Assembly: GCF_000400465.1 (NCBI RefSeq)
Contig: NW_008806280.1
Span: forward strand, 180,001-212,000
Direction: 5' to 3'
Source: Wallemia ichthyophaga EXF-994
Lineage: Eukaryota; Fungi; Basidiomycota
DNA: 32,000 nt
Position numbers and translations under genes: made by a program. The notes beneath the pieces were generated by a model. The model made no database searches and had not been told where the DNA came from. It saw nothing but the letters and a program-made list of their open reading frames with translations. This document shows positions 1,074 to 15,763 of the stretch, in pieces. Each line of letters starts with the position of its first letter. Within the stretch, counting starts at the first letter, position 1.

Positions 1074-2725
1074 TCACACATATCTTCTCCCTTCTTGCAG
1101 CTTGCTAATGATGGTGGGATGTTCATATTTCCAATATGATCCATCTGGGTAAGTATATTTTTCGATCGATTCCTGATGCATTTCGATGCTATTGTGGGAA
1201 TGTGAGACTAGCAATGGGAATCCAAAACAACCCACCTATATCCACAACTTTTGTCCAGAGGTGCATTATATCTGCCATGTGAATTGACGCTTACCGGATA
1301 CTTGAAGTGTTCGTGTAGATGGTCGACCCACTCGACAACGTTGCGATCGAATGTGGGTGCTATGGAAATGAAATCGATCATGGACAAGTGAACAACGTAT
1401 TCACACAACCCGACACCACCAGCATGAGGACATACTTGAGAGTATTGAGTGTTAGTGAAGTGCGAGATTGAGGCTGAAACGATTTTGCCTACCTGGTACA
1501 CCGAACTTGGCAGCCAACAGCATCACTGCTAGGCATTCATTAACTCCAGCGAGACGACATGCATCTATTTGGAGAACATCTATAGCTCCTGCTTGAAGAA
1601 GCTGCTTGAATAGAACCCTGTTTGCGCAGTGTTCTCCAGTAGCTACTCCGATTCCGATATCTTTCAACCCTTTGCGTATTCTAGCATGACCCAAGACATC
1701 ATCAGGCATTGTGGGTTCTTCAATGAACCATGGTTTACATTGCTCGAGTTTCTTGACGTACGCTATAGCCTCTTCGACATCCCAAACTTGGTTTGCATCA
1801 ATCATTAAGACGTTGCCTGTGAATCAACGTGAGCAGGATAGACCAATTGCTTCTCAACTCACCAGTGGGACCTGCATTCTTCCCTTCAATAGTCTTAGCG
1901 TGTACCCGCTTATCCTTGTTCTGATACTGAGGATCGTCGATGATATCTCTGATCACCTTGGCTCGAGCCAAGTCATCATCCACTGAAACGCCGACTTTAA
2001 GTTTAAAATGGTTGAAGCCAAGATCGAGTGCCTCTTTTGTGAGTCTCTGAACCTTGTCGGTGGTGTAACCCATCCAACCGACACTAGTAGAATAAGCTCT
2101 TAAACCTTCTTGTAAAGCTCTTTTCTCGCGCTCAGTTTTGGTTGACTGCCTCTCGTGCAGCATTTGGACAGCTTCTTCAGGTGTAAGAGCATCGCTGAGG
2201 TATTTGAGAGAGCTACACTTGACAATCTCTTCAGGAGTCATGTCAACGATAAGCTTCCACAGAGGCTTATTGCGAGATCTAGCGTACATATCCCAAACAG
2301 CATTGGCTACAGCCCCAGTCGCAAGATGAATAACACCCTTTTCTGGACCAATCCATCGAAGTTGACTGTCTGAGGTCAGAAGCTCCCACATAGCACCCAT
2401 GTCAGAGAAAAGGCTCTCTATAGGCATACCGACGAGCTTATCTGAGAGCTGTTTGATAGCTTCGATGACTATATCGTTTCCTTTACCGATAGTGAAAGTC
2501 ATTCCAAATCCTTTGAGGGTATCAGAGGCAGCAGCATTAGAATCAGCATTGGGAGTAGTATTGAGGATGACATAAGCAGCAGAGTAATTGCAATCAGTGT
2601 TCATTGCGTCAGTGCCATCGCTGAGACGCGGTTGAGATAAGAGGGAGATGTGTAGGAACAACGCACCCAGAGAGAGAGGTGGGAAAGCGAATATCGTGAG
2701 TAGAATAGCCAGTAATAATAGACAT
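1074..2725 (-). CDS. Enolase-superfamily (mandelate racemase subgroup) acid-sugar dehydratase, L-galactonate/L-fuconate dehydratase (ENOSF1/lgd1-like), ~484 aa
   Basis: Exons 2725-2667, 2620-1863, 1816-1493, 1434-1236, 1188-1074 (1455 nt). N-terminus [33 protein letters not shown]; KxK motif (FKLKVG); metal ligands in MIDANQ, FIEEP, ATGEH; PHAGGVGL. Substrate cannot be fixed from sequence. Confidence 0.92.
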
Positions 2726-3057
2726 GCTTGTGATAATGATGGTTGAGGTTCCTGTCGATTGCGCTTAAATAGGCGGTGCTTCGTGGCATCATTCGACCGA
2801 GAGATAATCGGGGTTGATTAAGGGCTGAATTGAATTATAATCTTGATTTTGCGAACGATAGGATTTAATTTGATATTTAATAGCAGATGATATCTGCTGG
2901 AGTCGGTTGAATGATGGGACGAAGAGGTAGCAGCCAGTAAGGAGTAATCTATGACATTGAAATGACGCAGTACTACTCAATGAGCACGATAAGAATTTGA
3001 ATAATCGTACGACATCGTTGCTCTCTTGAACATAACACATCACAGTGAATTAGAATT

Positions 3058-3902
3058 ATGAAATTTATTTTGGTAGCTATAGCCGCGTTAATCGCTAATA
3101 CCGTGGCTACTATCGACTTAGTCAAAACACGTATCCACGGTGTGGATGAATTGGGTTCGGATGTCCATCACTCGTCTTTTGGCAGCAGCGTGCAGTTGGA
3201 GCGAGACGCGAATGTGCAATACACCTTCTACACAGCTGCAGATGGAGACACAGTCACACCACACAAATCCATCATCAGCTTCATCGATTACGCAACTGGG
3301 CAGTACTGGGAAGACGTCGTTAGTATTCGAGATTCTGATGGCAGGGGTAGATACACGTTGAGAACAGTCAAATTCCCACTCAAAGCGAGCAACTGTCTTG
3401 TTAGGTTGTTCGTCGCAGCCAATGGCGAAAGCAGCGCATTTGATATTGGCACGCTTTCTTTTTCTGAAGACGCAGCAGCGGAAACAACAACCGAAAGCAA
3501 GACACCAGAAAAATCTATCCTTGCACCACTCCCTGAGATAACACACACATTCAAAACTGAACCAAAACATACACCTCTAGCTATCAGTGGGTTGGCTGCT
3601 ATATTCATCAATGGATTACCTTTGCTTGTGCTTCTAGGAGCTGTAAGTTAAGCGTGTGATGTTTAATCTCAACTAACGTAACACCCCCTCAGATATCATA
3701 CATCCCGCTCAACCTCAGACAATCTCACAGCAATCTCGCTTTCATTGGCACTATAATAGCCTTTGAAGGTCTCCTGCTTACATACTGGGTCAAGCTGACA
3801 CTATTTCAATTCATACCATTCGCTGTGCTCAACGGTCTTGCTCTCTTCGTATCGGGAAATCGAGCTTTAAGAGTATTAAAGAAGAGGCGCGAGGTAGCGT
3901 AA
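3058..3902 (+). CDS. SWP1: Oligosaccharyltransferase subunit Swp1 / ribophorin II, ~264 aa
   Basis: Exons 3058-3642 and 3693-3902 (intron GTAAGT..CTAAC..CAG). Signal peptide MKFILVAIAALIA; family motif LAPLPEITHTFKTEPK; three C-terminal hydrophobic segments ending GNRALRVLKKRREVA. Confidence 0.85.
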
Positions 3903-3958
3903 AACATTTGTATTTCATTTACTCAAAATGCATTGATACTCTTCTCACCGCACTTTCA

Positions 3959-4762
3959 ATGTCCACTTGGAGAACAATCGCAGCGCTGCCGGAGCATCTG
4001 CAGCCAGTCGGCAGTGAAACTATAGACAGACTGCGATTCATGCATCTCATCGAATATGCCAAAACACAAAAGAGAACTGGCTGGCTGAGAAGTGGCGTGA
4101 ATGGTGCAGAGAGTATCAGCGACCATATGTGGAGAATGTCGATAATGAGTTTGGTGTGTGCTGACGAACGCATCGATCACATCAAGTAGGCTGCTATCAT
4201 TACACTTAGGCCATTTCTAATGCCCCCTTAGAGCTTCGCAGATGGCCATAGTCCACGATATAGCTGAATGCATGTGAGGATGGCCTGATTAGCAAAAAAT
4301 ATTGGCCTCGCTTACTCTTCCTCTTTATAGTGTCGGTGACATAGCCCCTTCTGATAACATAACAAAACCAGTGAAGAATAATCTTGAAAGGGTGCGTTAC
4401 ATTTACGTCGTGCCATAATCTCACCAGCCTCATAGCAAGCTATGAATGACATAGTGCATAAATATCTCCATGGAAGTTATCAGGCGAGATACTTGATGGC
4501 TATTTGGGAGGTGAGTGTTCAAAACACTCATTGCGTCATTCACATTACGCAGGAATACGAGCAGCAGTCTTCCGCTGAATCCACCTTTGTCAAAGATCTC
4601 GACAGACTTGAAATGTGTCTGCAGGCATTCGAATACGAAAGGATACAAAACATCAATCTAAACGGTTTTTATACATCACTAGAAAGCATTAAAAACGATC
4701 AAGTAAGAATATATGCGGAGCTGCTGATCCAAGAAAGGAAACATTTGTTCAATATTACTTGA
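3959..4762 (+). CDS. HD-domain 5'-deoxynucleotidase (HDDC2/YGK1/YBR242W family), ~204 aa
   Basis: Exons 3959-4185, 4232-4273, 4331-4391, 4436-4510, 4553-4762 (615 nt). Motifs KRTGW, ESISDHMWRM, VHDIAECIVGDI, FVKDLDRLEM. Confidence 0.92.
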
Positions 4763-4768
4763 TAGCAT

Positions 4769-7720
4769 CTACTTATCATTCCCGTCGACTTGATTGGCGT
4801 CATCGATTGCCTCCTCTATAATAGCCCCAGCTTCCCGTGTGGCTAACCATGCCTCTTCTGTCTTTGTGAGATTTTCTGCAGCTGCTACACCCTTTAATAT
4901 ACTAAGTTCACGTTTCTTGTGTTCTGTGCGACGAAGTTGACGGAGCATAAAGTCCTTGATGGAGATGAGTGGTGTGTCATTGGGAATTCTCGGTAGAGTC
5001 TGCTACTGTTAGCTCAACAAGTGCCGTCAATATTCAGCCTACCTCTAAGAAATTGAGATGCAAAGCTTGTGATCCTAGTAATGATGCTATCTCAGCAGAA
5101 AACACATCTCCATCAGCCATATAAACGTCCAATAAGATCCGCAAGAGGTGGCTTCGTAAAGGCGGCGCCACTGCCACCATTGAAGTGCGTGCCAGAGCAA
5201 CGAGCCAACAGTTGGAGAGGTGCGAATTGTCTATGCACTTTCTCGCCAAGCTACCGCTCAATATATAACCAGGAAAGGCGCAATAATGCTGCGATGTAAA
5301 TGTGTCTCTCAAGTTCCTTGCTAGTATATTTAAAGCTGCACTATGTTGCTCGAGCTGTGAATGGGCGTTAGCATGAGGTTGTCACACTTGCATGCTAAAC
5401 ACTTACCTTTCCAAGAATTACAGCCTTCTCGAATAACAACGTGCTCTCAGTGAAAGGGTGTAAAGCTGTTTCAATAGAATTCCAGTCAAGGTCGCTGGCC
5501 ATCTGTAAAAAAAGGAGTAATTTGAGACGAGAGATGATAGCATTCTTGGTCATTGGAGAGATTTCAGTGGTATCCAAAACTGCTGTGACATATTGAGCGT
5601 ATGACTGATCGTGCTTCTGCAACTTGTACTCCTCAATCAATCTCCACATATCCCCACTTATGTTACTGTCCTTCAATGCTTCGACGACATTCCCAATGAG
5701 CATGTCAAGAAGAGCCTGTCGCATTCCCGTATCTTCTCTGTTGCGCGCCAAGACGAGAATCTCAAGGTACTCCTGCTCAGCCACCTTGTCAGTCCGCCCA
5801 AGGGCTTCAAGTAATATTCCTTCGTCGATCGAAGTTCGCGGATGAGACGACAGCACTTGCAGACCAGCATTCCTGTCATACAAAATGAGCCATAAGCCGT
5901 ACTCAAGTAATAGATCCGCCTCTTCGACTCTGTTCAACAGCCGTATGATATCCCTAAGTGGATCAACCACGTCCTTATCAACGATTGTTTGTTCAATAAA
6001 TCTTTTGTGTATTTTGATAGCCTCTTTGATGTCTCCATGAGATTCATAGAGGCGGGATAGTGCAGCGTATCTGCCATATCTGGTGAACCAAGGCTCAGCA
6101 ATGGGTAGCAAGATGTTGTTGGAATTGTTTATAAACACGTTCAAAGCATTCCTATCTTTATCCGACCTCTCAGCAAATATAATAGCCAAGCACGTATCTA
6201 AAATCATGTCTGTATATGACTCTGATTCATGATAAGTCGCCTGCCTTGCTCGCCTCCTCCGTCTATGCTCCTTGCTGAGACATTCAAGTAGCATGCTTCT
6301 TGCATTTTCCATCAATGAGTCGTAAAGTTGTCGAACTGGCTCGTCGCTCTCAACGTTTAAATACGGCGAGTAGTTTTTTTCAAGATTGCCAACGATAAGG
6401 TCTTTTATTGTACGAGGTATATTTTCAATAAGATTGGCAATCCCCAAAGGAATCTTGACAAACTCATCCGGGTCGAATAAACCAGCGGTGAGGTCAGGAA
6501 ACCAGCTGAGGATGAGGCGAATGTCACATTGGGATTTAGAGAATAGAGCAGAGGCATCACTGAAGGATGTCGATCTAAATAGCTGGAGGGCTGCGTAAAG
6601 GTGAATGTAGTAACTTTCGAGTGAATCTGTAGGCAGACTGTTGGCGAGAGATAACGCCTGCTGTCTGGCGTTGTCGTTCTCCATATCCAGGAGGTATATT
6701 GATTGGTCGAAGATTGAGGGAGGAATGAAAGCGTGTATGCTGCCAGTGTCAGTTGCCAAGATGACTTGGGTCGATTCAAGCTGGGAAGAGGAGTTTGAAG
6801 GGCGGTTTGAAGCGTTTGAGTAGTCTACAGAGGTATTCAACAAAGGAAAAGAAACAAAGTGTAGCTGATTGGGTATTGATTGAGGAATGCTTAGACCGAG
6901 TGGAGTGGATTGGAGGAACATGGGATGTAAATGAGATAGGGATAGAGAATGAATAAGAGAATGTGTAATTGTGGAGTGGATCTGCAGAGTGTTGTTGCTC
7001 AGAAGGGTGAATAAGTGAGGGGATTGGTGCACAATGGATTTTATGGTTGAAGGGAATTGAAGAGGGCCGTGTTTGGGTTCACCAGAGTACGAGTCGATGA
7101 AGACACCAACAGCACCCAAATCGTTATGCGTAATCATTAAAAACTCGTCAGCGTCATCGATAGAGGTGATGGACGGAGAGCCTTCAAAGGGCAATAAGGG
7201 GAGGAGTACGGAGTTAGTGAGGTTGAGGAGGCTATACGTGTTTGCAGTATCAGCCAAGCAAATGACGTCATTGTTTATAGCTGAGTCTAAGTGAAGAGAA
7301 GGCAAAGGTAGTTCGTTGATGACGGTGAGTCTTGGACTGAGTTTGAGACGACCGATGCTGGACTGTCTGATGACTACGATTGAGTTGCTAGATTGAAGGA
7401 GTTTAATAACGTTTCTGATATTTGATTTCTGTGGGTTGTAGCCGTTCAAGTGGTATAAGACACCATCTGTATCGAGCATAACGAGCGAATTGTTGAATTG
7501 TAGAATCTGTTTAGGCGTAAAATCGAGGTTGATGTTATTGTACGTGTTATGCCTATAAGACTGGAATTGAAGCTGATTGGTCGATCCAACAATCAGCGAA
7601 TCATCTGCAAGCTGGGTCAGGGATGCAGAGGATGTAGCAATAGAACCGACTAAAATGGTACAAGATATTTATTGGTTTCGTTGTGTTTGTGAAATTATTC
7701 AGCTTGAATGGCTTGAGCAT
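4769..7720 (-). CDS. Vps39/Vam6/TGFBRAP1(Vps3)-family vesicle-tethering subunit (CNH-like N-terminus plus clathrin-repeat-like helical region), ~936 aa
   Basis: Exons 7720-7651, 7604-5407, 5354-5043, 4999-4769 (2811 nt). Long ORF 5395-7479 extended by splicing. N-terminus MLKPFKL..INILYHFNDSLIVGS resembles fungal Vam6-family starts; helical repeats such as WLILYDRNAGLQVL and EQEYLEILVL; LLFEKAVILGK-LEQHSAALNIL. No C-terminal Zn finger seen. Start at 7720 depends on predicted intron 7605-7650. Confidence 0.8.
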
Positions 7721-8118
7721 CTGATGGTCGTTGGTTGTTAAGCCATACGCTATATTGCTGCCTATGTAACGCTTGAATTACATCTTGGTGCTTTATAGAC
7801 TCTCTAAACTTAGGTTCCATCAGTAAATCCAAGTTGTGTAAGCAGTGCGGGTATGTTATGAATTTGATGTATTCGGGACTATTTATAAAGATCAGCTGGT
7901 TTATCTAAAACACCTTAAATTACCCACTCCCTCCAATAATTCAGGTACTTAATATATTTTATAAACTCCGGCTTATCAAAGTACCCTTGCTGGGCTAATG
8001 CGTGGAGATAGAATGGATGGGCCAGTGACTGCACAAACTCAAGCTCAATCTCAAATTTATTTCTATTTTCTGTTTTCTGTTTGTCTTGTGTATCATGTGT
8101 CTCTTTCTCCCCTTCCAT
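7695..8118 (-). CDS. MED31: Mediator subunit 31 (Soh1), ~124 aa
   Basis: Exons 8118-7928 and 7878-7695 (375 nt). Hallmark [52 protein letters not shown]; stop TAA at 7697-7695. Confidence 0.93.
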
Positions 8119-8172: not shown

Positions 8173-10304
8173 TTATTCTTCTCCCTCTGCTTCCAAATCT
8201 AGTCCTACCAACTTGGGCGATGGCGGGAGTGGTTTACTCCACCTCTCCTCACTCGATACCTTGGGTGTTTCTCCTTCCGTCATCCCGAGCATCTCCTCCA
8301 GCTCTTTCTGTGCTTGATCCCACCTTCTCAACGAATCTTCTACAGGCGACCTCTCCTGTACAACTGTCTCTTGTGTTTTGTCATCACTCGACCTTCCTTC
8401 CCTCTCCTCGTTGTACTCTCCCCCTTTCACCTCTTTCTCATTTTGCTCCAAATCCACTTCCGTCTCTACCCGCCTCAATCCCTCTACCCCATTTGATTCT
8501 CCACTGTCTTCATCTTCATCCGATGAGCTAACGTCATCTACGTTGTACCCAAACGCAAGACTTGATCCCCTTGGTGCGATTATTGGTGCAGTTCTCTCGG
8601 GCTGTTTTTCTGATAACTGTGTATTTACCGTCGGTGTAATACCTGTGCTAACATATCCAACCGTCTCTGTCGGTGAGCGCAGCGTATCCAGCCACTCATC
8701 TTCACTGTCCTTTTGTGTAGCCTCTCGCCCAAGCGCTGCTTCATACATCCCGCTCCCTCCGTCGTCGAGATGATCATCTGTGCTTGAAGCATTCGCATTA
8801 GTTTTCTTCCTTATCCACCCCCTCCTATCTCGTCTCTTGTTTAATAACTTTTCTGTAAAGGGTGAGATACTCGATGTTCTTTGTGTTGATCTGAAAAGCA
8901 AACTTGTTCCTGAACTTGATGTCGATTGTTCATTTTGTACATCCCCAATATAGCTTCGACGTATTATCCTACCTAACCTCTCAACCCGGTCCTGACTTGT
9001 GTCAGATGCACGTATTGATGATACTACCAGTGACATCTGCTGCAGCCGCGGTATTGGACTAAAGGCACTTGTTTTGGGTTGCGTAGAGCTAGCCGCTATT
9101 GCTGCTGCTGTTGACGGTAGTGAATCTGGTATACTTTGGTAAGCAGACTTTAACGAACTAAGTGACTGCTTCGACTGTGGTCCCGATGTAGGTGTTACAG
9201 GTACAGCCTCATCGCATAAATCCATAAATAACCTCTCTAATTTTCCAAATAGTGGTATAATCAACTGATCTCTGAAACCCTTTATCACTGACTTGCGCAC
9301 ATTCATCACTGACGGTAATAACGCCACCTTGCTCGTTGATTCGTCGTTATACGACAGATTATGACTCGATCCATCCCCCGTTTTCGCAGAGTTTGCTGTT
9401 GATGATTTTGCTAGTGCCTGAATATGTGTATCTGTGCTATACGGTAGAAATACTCCTTCAAGAAGAGGTAAAACCTGACCGAAGAAGAATGTCCTGTTGT
9501 GAGCCCACTCAGTTGAGGTATTCTGATATGAAATTTAAGTCACCCTACCAAATTTCAACGGTACGTGTCGCAAAACGATCAGTACTCTCATCGACATGTT
9601 GAACAAGCTTGGCTCGAAGCGTAAGCATGCCAATACTGATCAGGTTGTTAAAATCAGTGGAAAGGCTTTCAATCACGCGCGATGGTTTTGAGCGAGCGAT
9701 AGTGTCTCTGATATGAATAATGACCAACGCGTTTAAATCTTCCAAAGATGTTATCTGCGTATGCGTCAATACGTCGACGTCGAGTGATAGAGAAAATGGA
9801 TTATAAAAGAACCATCAAACTCACCATGTTCTCGCCATTGAACAATGGCAGTACTTTGACGCATATCGCCTGCCAGGAATCGCCGTGGAGCTCAATGGCA
9901 CTAGCTATATCCTTACCCAAGCCGCCCTTGGCAGTGCTAGAGCTATTGCCACTACCACCAAACGCAGCGCTGTTGGAGGTTGCTGGAGCGTGCGAGAAAG
10001 AGGGTGACGTTTGATTGTACTTGCTGGAATTTCCTGGCTTTGATGACGCCAATTTGTGGAAAGTGCGATGAACTCTGGGTGAATGATGGATAGTGTGTGA
10101 GTGAGTTGAAGGATTTGGGGAACTGGGATTTGTTATTGGAGCTGAAATGCTGTTTGGATCGAGCTTCCGGCTGCTCGATGGGCTGGCAGGCGGCACATTC
10201 AGCAGCTGCGATCTCGATGGCGTTGAAGATGGAAATAGAGATGGTGAGATATTTGCAGATGAGTTTGGTATATTAAGCCGCAAATCACTCGGCTTGGTCG
10301 GCAT
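8173..10304 (-). CDS. HbrB-domain protein (TORC2-associated Bit61/PRR5-Protor-like), ~668 aa
   Basis: Exons 10304-9825, 9754-9549, 9493-8173 (2007 nt). HbrB motifs WQAICVKVLPLFNGE, LEDLNALVIIHI, WTFFFGQVLPLLEGVFLP, GFRDQLIIP; S/P-rich N-terminus and acidic low-complexity C-terminus. Confidence 0.8.
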
Positions 10305-10423: not shown

Positions 10424-13400
10424 ATGGCTGATCAACTCGAGTCTTTCATTGACAGACTCACCGGTGCTGTAGCGCTGCAGGATAGCCCGCTACCATCTAT
10501 TGTCGCCGAGGATTCCTCCGTGTGGGTGAAGCGCTTTCTTCACCTCCGATCTCCGATCTTAACGCCTAGGCTTTGCAGAACACTCCCAGTTGAATCGCAA
10601 TATCCAACAGACAAAGACAGCTCAACAACAGTCACGCGCTTGATCAACGACAGAAAAGCTGCCTTGTCTCTTCAGGCGTCTACCGCTCAAGGCGGTCCCT
10701 CTGGCTCCACCGCCACGACAGACGCACTCAACAATCTACTCAAGTTTGTCGCTTGCTTTGTTTTTTAGTGGATTTTAATGGCTCACTGTTTCCAGCTTCA
10801 TCGGTTCTACCTTTGGCGATGCTGATATGCACGATAAGATTGTGTTTGAGGTGTCTTCGCTGCTCAATTCCCCACGTTCCACGGACGATATCTCTTCTGC
10901 TCTAGTCGACACGCTTGGCTTCGATGCTCTTGATCTTATCGCCCAAGTTCTCTCCAATAGGGCTGAAATCGGTCTTGGATTGAATGACGTCGTGAGTTTA
11001 TCCGGTGTGTTACCTCACCCCTGCTCATCCCAATAGATGTCCTTGAACGCTCGCAACGCCGAGCAGCACTCTAAATCTCACAAGCGTGAGAAAGCACGCC
11101 ACAATGACTTGGAGGGTGCGTTTCGTGGTCTCTATCGCCAATGTCTCACCTTCCTCAGAATCCTACCTCACAATCAGCCCCGAAGAAGCTCGCAGGAGAA
11201 AGGAGGAAGAGCGCCAGCTAAACTCAAAGCGTCCATTATTCTCAAATGAAGGAGGCGTATGTGTCTGCATTTATCACCCATCATCAGCTGACACACTACA
11301 AGTCGATCGAAGAGCCAAACTATCCACATGTCTACAAGAATTCGGCCAATGGTGGTAATATCCTCTCCACTATGGGTTCTCGCTATATGCTACCCTTAGG
11401 CACAACGAAAGACCATTTCGACGTGGGTTGCATTTTATTACTAGCTATACTATCTAATATTACATCAAGAACTACGACGAAATCACTATACCTCCCTCAA
11501 AACCTATTCCACCAAAGATTCATGAACGCATCGTCGAAATTGGAGAAATGGACGCTCTCTGTCAACGATCTTTTAAGGTGTGCATCGCTTGCAATCGACT
11601 ACAACTGCAACTCTAATCTTCTGTCAGGGTTACGAAAAGCTCAATAGAGTTCAGTCTGTGGTCTACCCTACCGCTTACACAACTAATGAGAATATGCTCG
11701 TCTGTGGTGTGTATTAAAAGCGCTTAAACGACACCCACTAACATATCATAAAGCACCCACCGGAGCTGGTAAAACAGACGTTGCTATGCTCACAATTTTG
11801 AGGGTTGTCTCACAGTTTGCGGATGAGAACAAACTTACTTTTGGTCCTGGAAAGGGCAAAGGGTCTGCAAGTTTTGGTGTTAGGCTGGATGACTTCAAAA
11901 TTATCTATGTCGCACCAATGAAAGCACTGGCCGCTGAAATCACAGCCAAACTCGGCAAACGTCTAAGTTGGCTCGACATCAAAGTGAGAGAGCTAACAGG
12001 TGACACACAATTAACAAAAGCGGAAGTCAATGCAACTCAGATTATTGTCACCACGCCAGAAAAATGGGACGTTGTTACACGGAAACCAACTGGCGAGGGT
12101 GATCTCGCCTCAAAGGTCAAGCTGCTTATTATCGATGAAGTTCACCTGCTCAATGAAGACAGAGGTGCAGTTATTGAAACTATAGTTGCCAGAACTTTGC
12201 GCCAGGTTGAAGCTACCCAGTCTCTTATTAGAATTGTCGGTCTCAGTGCTACTTTGCCCAATTATGTCGATGTAGCCGATTTCCTTAGAGTGTCACGATA
12301 CAAGGGACTGTTCTATTTTGATGGCTCCTTCAGGCCAATCCCGTTAGAGCAACACTTTATTGGCGTCAAAGGCAAGCCGGGAAGCTCCCAATCTAAGAAA
12401 AATCTTGACCAAGCAGCCTATGAAAAAGCTGTCGAGCTAGCTGAGCAGGGTCATTCAGTTATGGTGTTTGTTCATGCTCGTAAAGAGACAGTCAAGACTG
12501 CTGAAACGTTGCTCGAGTATGCTAAAAAAGACAACCAGTTGGAAGCATTCGACTGCTCTGAGCACCCCCGTTATCATATACACAAGCGTGACATTGCACA
12601 GTCGAGAAACAAAGAGATGAGGCAGCTATTTGAAAAGGGCTTCGGTATACATCACGCTGGTATGCTTCGTTCGGATCGTAATATGATGGAAAGAATGTTC
12701 GAAGATGGTGCTCTCAAGATATTGTGTTGCACCTCTACACTTGCTTGGGGTGTTAATTTGCCGGCCCACGCTGTCATCATTAAGGGAACTCAAGTTTACG
12801 ATAGCAGTAAGGGTGCTTTCTCTGATCTTTCCATTCTCGATGTACTACAAATATTTGGTAGGAGTGGTCGACCTGGCTACTCGACGAGTGGTGTGGCATG
12901 GCTGTGTACATCTTATGAAAAGCTCGATGATTATATTCAAGCTGTTCTGTCCTCCCATGCAATTGAATCCAAATTCCATACCGGAATCGTCGACGCTTTA
13001 AATGCTGAAATATCTCTAGGCTCTGTCTCTAATGTAAGTGAAGCTGTTCAGTGGTTATCGTTCACATATATGTTCGTGCGCATGAGGAAAAATCCACTAA
13101 TGTACGGCATGGATCACGATGAACCACTCAATGACCCGCTTCTTGGGAACAAGCGCAACATGCTGATAATGTCAGCTGCGCGTCAACTAGCACTAGCAAA
13201 GATGATCAAGTTTGATGAAAATGACATGATGTTCGAGTCGGACGATATGGGTAGAATTGCTTCAAGGTTCTACATATGTCATGAATCCATCAATATCTAC
13301 AATAAAGAGCTCAACCCAACTATGTCGGAGGCTGATATTATGAGTGTCTTGTGTCAATCAGTGGAGTTTGACCAGATACAGATGCGTGATTCTGAGGTGC

Positions 13401-15763
13401 CTGAGCTTAAGCATCTCATGGAAGACATCTGTCCGTGTCAAGTCAAAGGTGGCACAGATACCAGTCAGGGCAAATGTAACATTCTCCTGCAAGCTTACAT
13501 TAGTAGAGCCTATATTGATGACTTTGCGTTGGTGTCTGACTCCAACTATGTTGCACAGAATGGCGCAAGACTGATACGAGCCCTACTCGACATTGGTCTC
13601 AGTAAAAAGTGGGCGGTGACGACATCTGGAGTTATCTCAATGAGCAAAGCCCTAGAGCAACGTTTGTGGCCGTATGAGCATCCTATGAAACAGCAATTCG
13701 GTCTCAGAAACGAAGTCATTTACAATATTACTCGCTGGGCAGATGAAACTACGATACAAGAGTTAGCTGAGCTCAGTCCAGCGGAGCTAGGTAGTTTGAT
13801 TCATCTCAATGAATCACATGGAGCAGCTCTGCATAGGATTGTTAAGAGTTTCCCTACCCTTTCTCTCAGTGTATACTTGAAGCCGCTTAGCCATGAGGTC
13901 CTCAAGCTGCAAATACACGCAAAGCCAAAATTCGCCTGGAATGAAAGAATAAGTGGCACGATGGAAAATTTCTTCTTAATTGCTGAGAGCGAAGACGAGC
14001 TCGATATCTTGCAGTGGACCAACGTTCAAATCAGGCCCACTACGGAGGAAACTAGTATTGACTTCATTTTGCGTATAGAAAACGATAAGAAGCCAGACTT
14101 TATCACCTTGAGATCGGCTTCTGAGAGATGGCTAGGATCTGAAGATCTTGTGTCGGTGTCATTTGAGGATCTGATCATGCCGGCTTCACCTAGTCCTCCA
14201 ACGGAGATTATTGATTTGCCATTCTTACCAGTGTCGGGACTCAGCAATTTAAAGCTTGAGCAAGCCTTGAACAGTATAGGTATCCGTAATTTCAATCCAA
14301 TTCAGACTCAGTGCTTTGAGCCATTCTATGTCTACTCAGACAATGTGCTGCTATGCGCTCCTGTTTACGCAGGCAAGTCAATTCTTTCTCAATTATCGAT
14401 TTGGTGCGTAGTGCGCGTTATATGAGTGCATCTTTTGCTAAACGAAGCATTCAGGAAAGCATTCACATTACAGCGCAACACACGTGCACTTATAGTTACG
14501 CCAACAGCTACTTTGGCCCGTGAGACTGCCCACGTGCTTACTACAAAGTTTTCCAAAGCGATGAGTGTCAATGTCCTCAACCTGCATTCAAAGGCAGAGC
14601 AGCGGGAGTCACAGCTGAAGCAAAATAGGGTTGTGTTTGTTGCGAGTGCGAATGTGCTCCAAGATCTACTCTGCAGTGGACAGAAAGATCAGCTTCTGGA
14701 TGACCTGTCGATATTAGTTGCAGACGATTTGCATCTTATGGGCTCCGCTTATGAAATAGCTCTGTCAGTAGTGAAGCAATCTGTCTCAGATACACGCTTT
14801 ATCGGGATCAGCGCATCTCTCGATAACATTGAAGACCTGAGGAAGTGGCTGCGCGTTGATCCTGCGCTTACATACAATTTTGCACCAAAACATCGTACGC
14901 TGCCGATAAGCACTAATGTTCAATCGCACTCAGTCGTGCCAACGTCTGCTTTCATGAAAGCTCTTATTAAGCCAACGTACGCGCTCATCAAAATAGCTCC
15001 CAAAGGAGCAATAATATTTGTCCCTACACGCACTCAATGCAGAAGTGTTGCGTCAGATTTGATTACGCTCTCGGCAACGGATTCAGATTATATTGGACTG
15101 GCGACCGAAGAATCTGTAGCGCTGGAACCCTACCTCGATAGATTATCTGACAAGACTTTGGTGGGATATCTTGTCAATGGCATAGGAATTTACTACACTG
15201 GCTTGCCTTTAGAGGATCTAGCATTGATCTTGGAGCTTTTTTTGACGGGTGTGCTACGCGCATTGATCGTTCCCAGAGATATGTGCTGGTCGTTGCCGGT
15301 ACGCGCTTCAACAGTGTGTGTGATGAACACCCAGTACCTGTCTACAAAGAATGTCAAGGACAGCAGTGGACAGGAGAAGGCTGACAAACAGGTGCAAGAG
15401 TATTCACTTTCGGAGGTCGCTCATATGCAGGCATTCGCGAGCGCAGACGTTGAAGGCGATAGCGAGGCTACACGTACTTGTGTATTGATGGCGCAGGAAA
15501 ATGGGAACAAGGAGCTTTATTCGTACTTCCTCAATGCGGGTCTTCCACTTGAATCACGTTTGAGTGAGGATGATGAACTGCTCTATTATGTCAAGCACGA
15601 GAGGAATTACGGCAGGATAAAGGATGTTGGGCAAGTCGACAAGCTACTCAAGCAGACGTATTACGTCAGAAGATCTAAGACAAACCCAACTTATTACGAT
15701 GCCAAAGGCGATGGCGTTAGGGCATTGGCGAATAAGATATGGAATGCATCAAGTGATGTGTAA
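10424..15763 (+). CDS. SLH1: Ski2-like helicase SLH1/ASCC3 (RQT complex), ~1652 aa; intact first cassette plus Sec63 domain, degenerate and truncated second cassette
   Basis: Exons 10424-10743, 10796-10991, 11037-11115, 11159-11256, 11303-11422, 11470-11577, 11628-11706, 11754-14403, 14455-15763 (4959 nt). YPHVY; Walker A APTGAGKT (spliced); DEVH; [25 protein letters not shown], which fits Slh1/ASCC3 better than Brr2; motif [11 protein letters not shown]. Confidence 0.88.

Follow-up and report, generated by a model that had tools for sequence, protein, structure and literature searches.

In a 32,000-nucleotide (nt) stretch of the genome of the basidiomycete fungus Wallemia ichthyophaga EXF-994 (contig NW_008806280.1, positions 180,001 to 212,000; this whole stretch is here the window, numbered from its first letter), two neighbouring minus-strand genes, MED31 and a gene of the Vps3/Vps39 family, have coding sequences that run into each other by 26 nt in different frames. 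A same-strand overlap at 7720-7695 had been put forward in the initial annotation, which was made from the letters alone, and its coordinates hold. At the level of sequence comparison the overlap is confirmed as one between two genuine, conserved coding sequences that share nucleotides, and the recurrence of its ATG, stop, intron position and intron phase in three other lineages is far beyond chance. The reading we favour, and to which we would give a probability of a little over 60%, is that two real and conserved genes came to overlap by loss of the spacer between them, with the downstream gene being expressed from its own mRNA that starts inside MED31. The features are collected in Table 1.

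The only close homologs of the window genes are from Wallemia (Wallemiomycetes, Basidiomycota). Those compared were a Logan contig (L001, protein P0001; 80% protein identity), W. mellicola (proteins P0002 and P0003, contig L002; 59-61%), and the 5,883-nt Logan contig L003 from the RNA-seq run SRR23314750, which carries a full-length spliced MED31 (P0004) and comes from the same species as the genomic contig L088; the contigs of P0035 (L086 and L087) have just the C-terminal part of the Vps-family gene. The same ATG, the same TAA, the 26-nt overlap, an open exon 1 and the phase-1 position of the intron are kept in L001, L002 and L003, and with them the frame of the MLKPF-type N-terminus, on whose presence in related species the proposal had been made to depend. 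In the region of overlap the sequence is MLKPFNLNNFSNKQKSINLLYQY in L001 and MLKPFNLNNFAKKNKSINLLYQY in L002 and L003, and L003 reads CCATCAGATGCTGAAACCGTTCAACCTAAATAA, its MED31 stop again lying 26 nt beyond the downstream ATG. The sequence of the intron has itself diverged (GTTCGT..CTAAC..CAG in L001, GTTAGT..CTAAT..TAG in L002). Gene order, HbrB-family, MED31, Vps-family and HD_3, is conserved in L001 and L002. A MED31 scan of metagenomes returned 80 loci, none from Wallemia and none with a Vps-family gene within 3 kb downstream, which is weak negative evidence, and searches of the literature turned up neither this overlap nor any account of coding overlaps in Wallemia.

Which of the two frames does selection see? 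In exon 1 of the Vps-family gene the ratio of nonsynonymous to synonymous differences per site (pN/pS, Nei-Gojobori) is 0.17-0.42 at pS 0.44-0.79, and over codons 1-65 it is 0.17-0.31 (for codons 24-65 and 1-65, L003 stands for the W. mellicola-side lineage, and the L002 intron is 4954-4998). Among the 24 coding bases that are shared, six sites vary between three lineages; each of them is an amino-acid change in the MED31 frame, and five are silent in the Vps frame. Counted as differences, the overlap has none that is synonymous and 3-5 that are nonsynonymous when read as MED31, against 2-4 synonymous and 0-2 nonsynonymous when read as Vps. Since every variable site changes a MED31 amino acid and most are silent in Vps, selection acts on the Vps frame and the MED31 tail, which differs among lineages (for instance DAETVQPK), is a passenger; constraint at the protein level was found for the Vps frame alone and not for both. 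Even the TAA of MED31 is formed by Asn-Asn codons (AAT AAT) of the downstream gene.

Table 1. Features of the overlapping pair and its neighbours, in window coordinates
Feature	Position	Strand	Basis or remark
Overlap of the two coding sequences, 26 nt	7695..7720	-	MED31 codons DAQAIQAE plus stop; Vps-family codons MLKPFKLNN, different frame
MED31 exon 1	7928..8118	-	ATG 8118-8116; translation and Pfam Med31; donor position agrees with a relative's spliced RNA contig
MED31 intron, 49 nt, GTGGGT..CTGAT..AAATAG	7879..7927	-	Splice restores NYWRD|PEYIKF
MED31 exon 2	7695..7878	-	Stop TAA 7697-7695; stop position shared with L001, L002 and L003
Vps-family exon 1, 70 nt (23 codons and 1 base)	7651..7720	-	ATG 7720-7718; frame conserved in L001, L002 and L003
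Vps-family intron 1, 46 nt, phase 1, GTCGGT..CTGAC..TTGCAG	7605..7650	-	Homologous 45-nt intron spliced out in L003
Vps-family exon 2	5407..7604	-	Holds the 694-residue open reading frame (5395-7479); internal Met66 is ATG 7479
Vps-family intron 2, 52 nt, GTAAGT..CTAAC..CACAG	5355..5406	-	Protein colinear with the open reading frame of the RNA contig
Vps-family exon 3	5043..5354	-	Colinear with the open reading frame of the RNA contig
Vps-family intron 3, 43 nt, GTAGGC..CTAAC..GCAG	5000..5042	-	Colinear with the open reading frame of the RNA contig
Vps-family exon 4	4769..4999	-	Stop TAG 4771-4769
Two-codon upstream open reading frame, ATG-GCT-TAA	7738..7746	-	18 nt ahead of the Vps-family ATG, within MED31 codons S-V-W-L-N
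Stop of the upstream same-strand gene	8173..8175	-	Open reading frame 8173-9327 ends here; HbrB family by synteny
Convergent HD-domain (HD_3) gene, last exon	4442..4762	+	Stop TGA 4760-4762; Pfam HD_3 E=1.1e-9

Much of what can be said about splicing derives from L003. Set against L088 it is 99.5-100% identical but has 12 gaps, 39-49 nt long, whose borders are GT..AG or, in the HD_3 gene on the opposite strand, CT..AC, and the same pattern is seen against L002 of W. mellicola; as its gaps with respect to the genome are intron-bounded, L003 is an assembly of spliced RNA. Its junction 2579|2580 corresponds to L088 6479|6525, from which a 45-nt intron (GTTAGT..TATAG) has been removed with identical flanks (228/228 and 1606/1606). 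With this transcript of a relative as guide the Vps-family gene was completed to four exons and a product of 936 amino acids, which on L003 gives a single tblastn high-scoring segment pair (residues 1-936, at 2510-5320), the L003 open reading frame being uninterrupted and colinear with the model throughout. Intron 1 splits an Asn codon (A|AT) and leads into DSLIVGST. Upstream of ATG 7720 there is an in-frame stop at 19 codons with no ATG between, and no other ATG lengthens the product. The earlier proposal that the exon opened by this ATG is joined through an intron at 7650-7605 to the 694-residue open reading frame is thus borne out in its coordinates, in the homologous splice in the relative's RNA and in the retention of the arrangement by orthologs; the gene model with exon 1 is supported by the orthologous loci, by purifying selection, by the spliced contig and by a family N-terminal motif. 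A gene caller began the L003 open reading frame at TTG 2567, past the end of MED31, an instance of how automatic methods sidestep the overlap.

In the 124-residue product of the upstream gene, Pfam places Med31 (PF05669) at residues 20-112, covering profile positions 2-94 of 95; the score is 129.7 bits (cutoff 25; E=4.2e-38), and on that basis the protein is the Mediator subunit Med31/SOH1, its exon structure and C-terminal end being the same in orthologs. The homologous intron is missing from the RNA contig L003 and present in the genomes L002 and L088. Beyond HRQQYSVW the frame continues to the TAA at 7697-7695, and the annotated W. mellicola models, 125-130 residues long and ending ...PPSDAETVQPK, all share the homologous TAA. 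Conservation is weak after Trp109, and in other organisms just a few residues of MED31 follow this Trp. Might MED31 then end earlier, or be spliced otherwise with GTATGG at 7748-7743 as donor, so that its coding sequence falls short of 7720? The hexamer is donor-like, and the distant relative L085, considered below, may have one more intron near the 3' end, directly behind the codon for the conserved Trp. However, Pfam extends the Med31 domain to residue 112, and the same hexamer codes for its conserved Val-Trp, the stop is common to all the W. mellicola models, and L003 is colinear and gap-free with its own genome over the whole MED31 tail, within the upstream flank just mentioned, which is as had been predicted for an exon 2 read unspliced past QQYSVW. 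We regard an earlier end as highly improbable. The MED31 intron of the species behind L003 and L088 has no stop codon and keeps the frame (L088 6001-6435), and for this reason prokaryote-style gene callers give an intron-retaining 'MED31' of 143-144 residues (P0016, P0019). Another product, the 141-residue 'MED31' P0005 of contig L004, is unspliced, has the Illumina adapter AGATCGGAAGAGCACACGTCTGA fused inside MED31 (L004 2240-2267), and was ignored as being partly an artefact.

For the downstream protein, a PDB search with the single 936-residue sequence or with a profile of three orthologs gave no match even at E<=10; Pfam gave Vps39_1 (PF10366) over residues 493-597 at full profile length, a marginal match of 22.3-22.4 bits against a gathering threshold of 22, CNH at 21-22 bits, under its gathering threshold of 26, and no match to Vps39_2 at E<=0.1. 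A profile search with the exon-2 sequences brought in 341 relatives; the full-length ones among them have 900-1250 residues and bear the labels 'CNH domain-containing' or 'vacuolar sorting protein 39 domain 2-containing'. With 34 sequences the family profile matches yeast Vps3 of the CORVET complex (PDB 8qx8, chain E) through the N-terminal half (E=5e-41 to 4e-39, 143.8 bits), Vam6/Vps39 of HOPS (7zu0, chain E) through the C-terminal half (E=5e-24, 87.6 bits), and the Chaetomium Vps39 N-terminal domain (7zty, chain A; E=3e-20 to 4e-17). The profile's C-terminus aligns to Vam6 residues 790-1018 with 40.7 bits, and the Vps39_2 region may be divergent and not absent. The protein belongs, at family level, to Vps3/Vps39, with Vps3 as the best match of the family profile among solved structures. 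The designation 'Vps39-family' of the initial annotation stands as a statement about the family, though the closest structure by profile is yeast Vps3 and not Vam6/Vps39.

Remote homologs (at least 20) start M-x(2-12)-P-[FY]-x-L-x-x-[LIV] and have, beyond an insert that varies, LY[IV]G[ST]SDG. The window has the same pattern across exon 1 and the start of exon 2 (PFxLxx[LIF] ... SLIVGST), and yeast Vps3 has its counterpart in PFTISTLL ... IFLGTTTG, the Vps3 alignment opening at PFTISTLL (residue 130) and continuing through IFLGTTTGDLLHY. The N-terminal region is shorter in Wallemia than in other fungi. That the N-terminus resembles family starts was part of the original suggestion, and the P-[FY]-x-L motif of the remote homologs and Vps3 is in keeping with it. 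Exon 1 would supply the first strand region of the N-terminal beta-propeller (PFxLxxF ... SLIVGS). There would be no overlap at the protein level if exon 1 were a spliced 5' untranslated region (UTR) and translation began at Met66 (ATG 7479); two NCBI models of W. mellicola do begin at the equivalent MLDTDG, and the context of AUG 7720 is weak. Yet codons 1-65 have the low pN/pS given above in a frame intact in four lineages, exon 1 holds the motif that aligns with the propeller start of Vps3, the relative L085 retains a homologous exon 1 open reading frame, and scanning ribosomes would reach AUG 7720 first. A start at Met66 would delete the family-wide motif and so, as had been foreseen, the start of the propeller; we consider it very unlikely.

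The existing annotation has, as was anticipated, truncated one of the two genes: all the W. mellicola models retrieved lack exon 1. Some are 5'-partial from DSLIIG (838 or 877 residues), others have an MLDTDG start (797 residues) and XP_006957149 is a 606-residue fragment; the two NCBI models with MLDTDG starts, P0028 and P0030, begin at the equivalent of the window's ATG 7479. The W. mellicola models over L002 5001-7923 (P0002, P0027, P0028, P0003) also have spurious introns, and some of them leave out internal coding sequence that the RNA contig has; in P0002, for example, NLNNSR is followed directly by SVVHQSPHLF, and about 60 residues that stand between them in the RNA-derived P0036 are missing. 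What the models lack at the N-terminus comes to 24, 65 or more than 300 residues and hence includes the start of the beta-propeller, and the corrected four-exon model is transferable across the genus.

How did the two genes come to share nucleotides? An AT-rich relative in metagenome assembly ERZ27248865 (L085; 28.7% GC, about 43% protein identity) has the same four-gene order and, within 2030-2830, a homologous exon 1, MKSDLAPYVLNDFLNINDL, with a 66-nt phase-1 intron directly before N-S-L-Y-I-G. The end of MED31 lies there at 2407-2409, or with an extra 3' intron at 2520-2522, and the downstream ATG is at 2656, leaving an overlap-free spacer of 246 or 133 nt. (The possible extra intron, GTAAAT..ACGTAG, would add a 20-residue tail.) As L085 keeps the order and the intron but has a spacer of 133-246 nt, the overlap arose by spacer loss, and on the simplest reading this happened on the branch from which the four Wallemia sequences compared here descend. 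An unconstrained C-terminal tail of MED31 would then have come to enclose the downstream start codon and eight first codons, and would simply continue until it meets the TAA made by the downstream AAT AAT.

Such a loss would be in character with the neighbourhood. Wallemia genomes are about 10 Mb, and the GC content of the window is 44.3%; for W. ichthyophaga as a whole the figures are 45.35% GC and about three quarters of the genome in coding sequence (PMC3849046). From the stop of the HbrB-family gene to the ATG of MED31 is 54 nt in the window, against 44 nt for L003 and 41 nt as annotated in W. mellicola, and at the other end 6 nt separate the HD_3 stop (4760-4762) from the Vps-family stop (4771-4769). 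With stops 6 nt apart, the 3' UTRs of the HD_3 and Vps-family genes must run antisense into each other's coding sequence, and with spacers of +54, -26 and +6 nt, promoters, UTRs and poly(A) sites must here sit inside neighbouring coding sequences. The 26-nt overlap is the extreme of this general compaction, which makes it a new and well-supported example of a known phenomenon. Of the neighbours themselves, the window open reading frame 8173-9327 has no Pfam domain match and its orthologs carry PF08539 (HbrB); the MED31 promoter or 5' end must overlap this gene too. Long open reading frames at 11786-15763 on the plus strand belong, by synteny with L001, L002 and L088, to a large gene for a Brr2-like DEAD/Sec63 helicase, which is divergent with respect to the HbrB-family gene; apart from the spacer between these two, 131 nt in L002, the cluster has no sizeable non-coding stretch.

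From what RNA would the downstream protein be made? On the reading favoured here the Vps-family gene would have its own capped mRNA with a short leader, beginning within the body of MED31, most probably in its second exon, and for MED31 mRNAs polyadenylation would take place in exon 1, intron 1 or the early part of exon 2 of the downstream gene. The pair would then form tandem transcription units that overlap, with ordinary scanning on each mRNA; read-through RNAs covering several genes may be produced as well, though they would not serve as the chief template from which the downstream protein is translated. As the neighbours are 54 and 6 nt away, transcripts that cover their coding sequences must be routine at this locus. 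Overlapping UTRs of adjacent fungal transcripts, merged by assemblers, are well documented (PMC4363200), and basidiomycete genes inside read-through transcripts are also transcribed independently (PMC4503453).

Several points weigh against this. The promoter and transcription start site inside MED31 are putative, and the splice evidence is from L003, another species whose protein is about 66% identical to the window's. The context of AUG 7720 is weak, with C at both -3 and +4. Shortly before it lies a two-codon upstream open reading frame (uORF) with a strong context, G at -3 and at +4, that is conserved as ATGGCTTGA in L001, L002 and L003, its conservation being due to its embedding in the MED31 codons S-V-W-L-[ND]. 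This uORF would hamper scanning unless transcription starts within about 24 nt of AUG 7720, so that either the leader would be shorter than about 24 nt or reinitiation after the uORF would contribute. Conservation at synonymous sites immediately before the ATG is no evidence for a promoter or leader element embedded there, the invariant runs of 11-12 nt (AGCGTATGGCTT, CCATCAGATG) being equalled elsewhere in the exon. Finally, L003 runs unbroken over the HbrB-family, MED31 and Vps-family genes, and a bi- or tricistronic RNA is conceivable. Since L003 also merges the HD_3 gene from the opposite strand, its continuity is no proof of a single molecule. On the matter of 3' ends, AATAAA at 7669-7674 (minus strand; Vps codons P-I-N), 24 nt past the MED31 stop, is not a conserved poly(A) signal, being absent from that place in L001 and L002.

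Translation of both proteins, perhaps together with the HbrB-family product, from one polycistronic mRNA is an alternative. Ribosomes terminating at UAA 7697-7695 would step back 26 nt to AUG 7720, or reinitiation there would be coupled to the uORF. There is no spacer room for a conventional promoter, with -26 nt before the Vps-family gene and 54 nt before MED31, and L003 spans all three genes, beginning in the divergent region upstream of the HbrB-family gene. The geometry of a start before a stop also recalls the termination-reinitiation cassettes of RNA viruses (calicivirus, influenza B M1/BM2), in which a downstream AUG precedes or overlaps the upstream stop in another frame. In those cassettes the overlaps are 1-14 nt and a motif complementary to 18S rRNA, part of the termination upstream ribosome-binding site (TURBS), is needed; the Wallemia pair by contrast is nuclear and intron-containing, TGGGA (TURBS motif 1) was not found in the 159 nt upstream of AUG 7720, and a backward move of 26 nt is long by comparison. 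Reinitiation after an upstream open reading frame of 124 codons, as here, is normally very inefficient in eukaryotes. As for the contig, short-read assembly merges separate RNAs, as the fused opposite-strand gene illustrates.

Polycistronic transcripts are documented in other basidiomycetes, the Agaricomycetes, where tandem same-strand genes lie on one long RNA in an order conserved among relatives (Gordon et al. 2015, PMC4503453). However, the open reading frames of those cases are by definition non-overlapping, the genes are independently transcribed as well, and the conservation falls outside the Agaricomycetes. We judge this alternative unlikely. Its fullest form, an operon-like HbrB-MED31-Vps unit in which one capped RNA from the HbrB promoter would give three proteins by backward or uORF-coupled reinitiation, conserved across the genus, strikes us as a little more doubtful again; were it true, it would be a cellular counterpart of the viral stop-start cassettes.

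A dicistronic MED31-Vps mRNA could in principle be served in another way, by 40S subunits that bypass the MED31 AUG and scan on to 7720. Leaky scanning is used by some eukaryotic and viral bicistronic mRNAs, and the continuity of L003 across both genes would suit it. Against it are the strong context of the MED31 AUG, AACAAATGG, with A at -3 and G at +4, the weak one of AUG 7720, and the AUGs that intervene, four in the window and three in L003, among them an in-frame MED31 Met and two minimal uORFs. It is hardly credible as the source of the downstream protein.

With separate overlapping mRNAs preferred, the closest company for the locus is to be sought among compact genomes. Overlapping transcription units in the compacted eukaryotic genomes of microsporidia and nucleomorphs were reportedly the subject of work by Williams et al. 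in PNAS in 2005. There too spacers are near nil, promoters, transcription start sites and poly(A) sites lie in neighbours and transcripts cover adjacent genes, as they would in Wallemia with its predicted transcript ends; Wallemia differs in being a free-living basidiomycete, with a two-frame overlap of coding sequences, a spliceosomal intron after exon 1 and genus-wide conservation. Among fungi the CodingQuarry paper (PMC4363200) deals with same-strand 3'/5' and convergent 3'/3' UTR overlaps that lead assemblers to fuse transcripts, much as L003 fuses four genes from both strands. The overlaps there are between UTRs, whereas that in Wallemia goes 26 nt into both coding sequences.

Only if the downstream protein were translated from a bicistronic RNA or by reinitiation would the locus be a new kind of system, and that we think improbable. 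What it does provide is an example of compaction producing coding overlap, an unconstrained upstream tail having been overprinted by a conserved downstream N-terminus. Since Wallemia is culturable, it is tractable for the study of how initiation and 3'-end formation are managed without intergenic DNA, and of the translation of fungal multi-gene RNAs.

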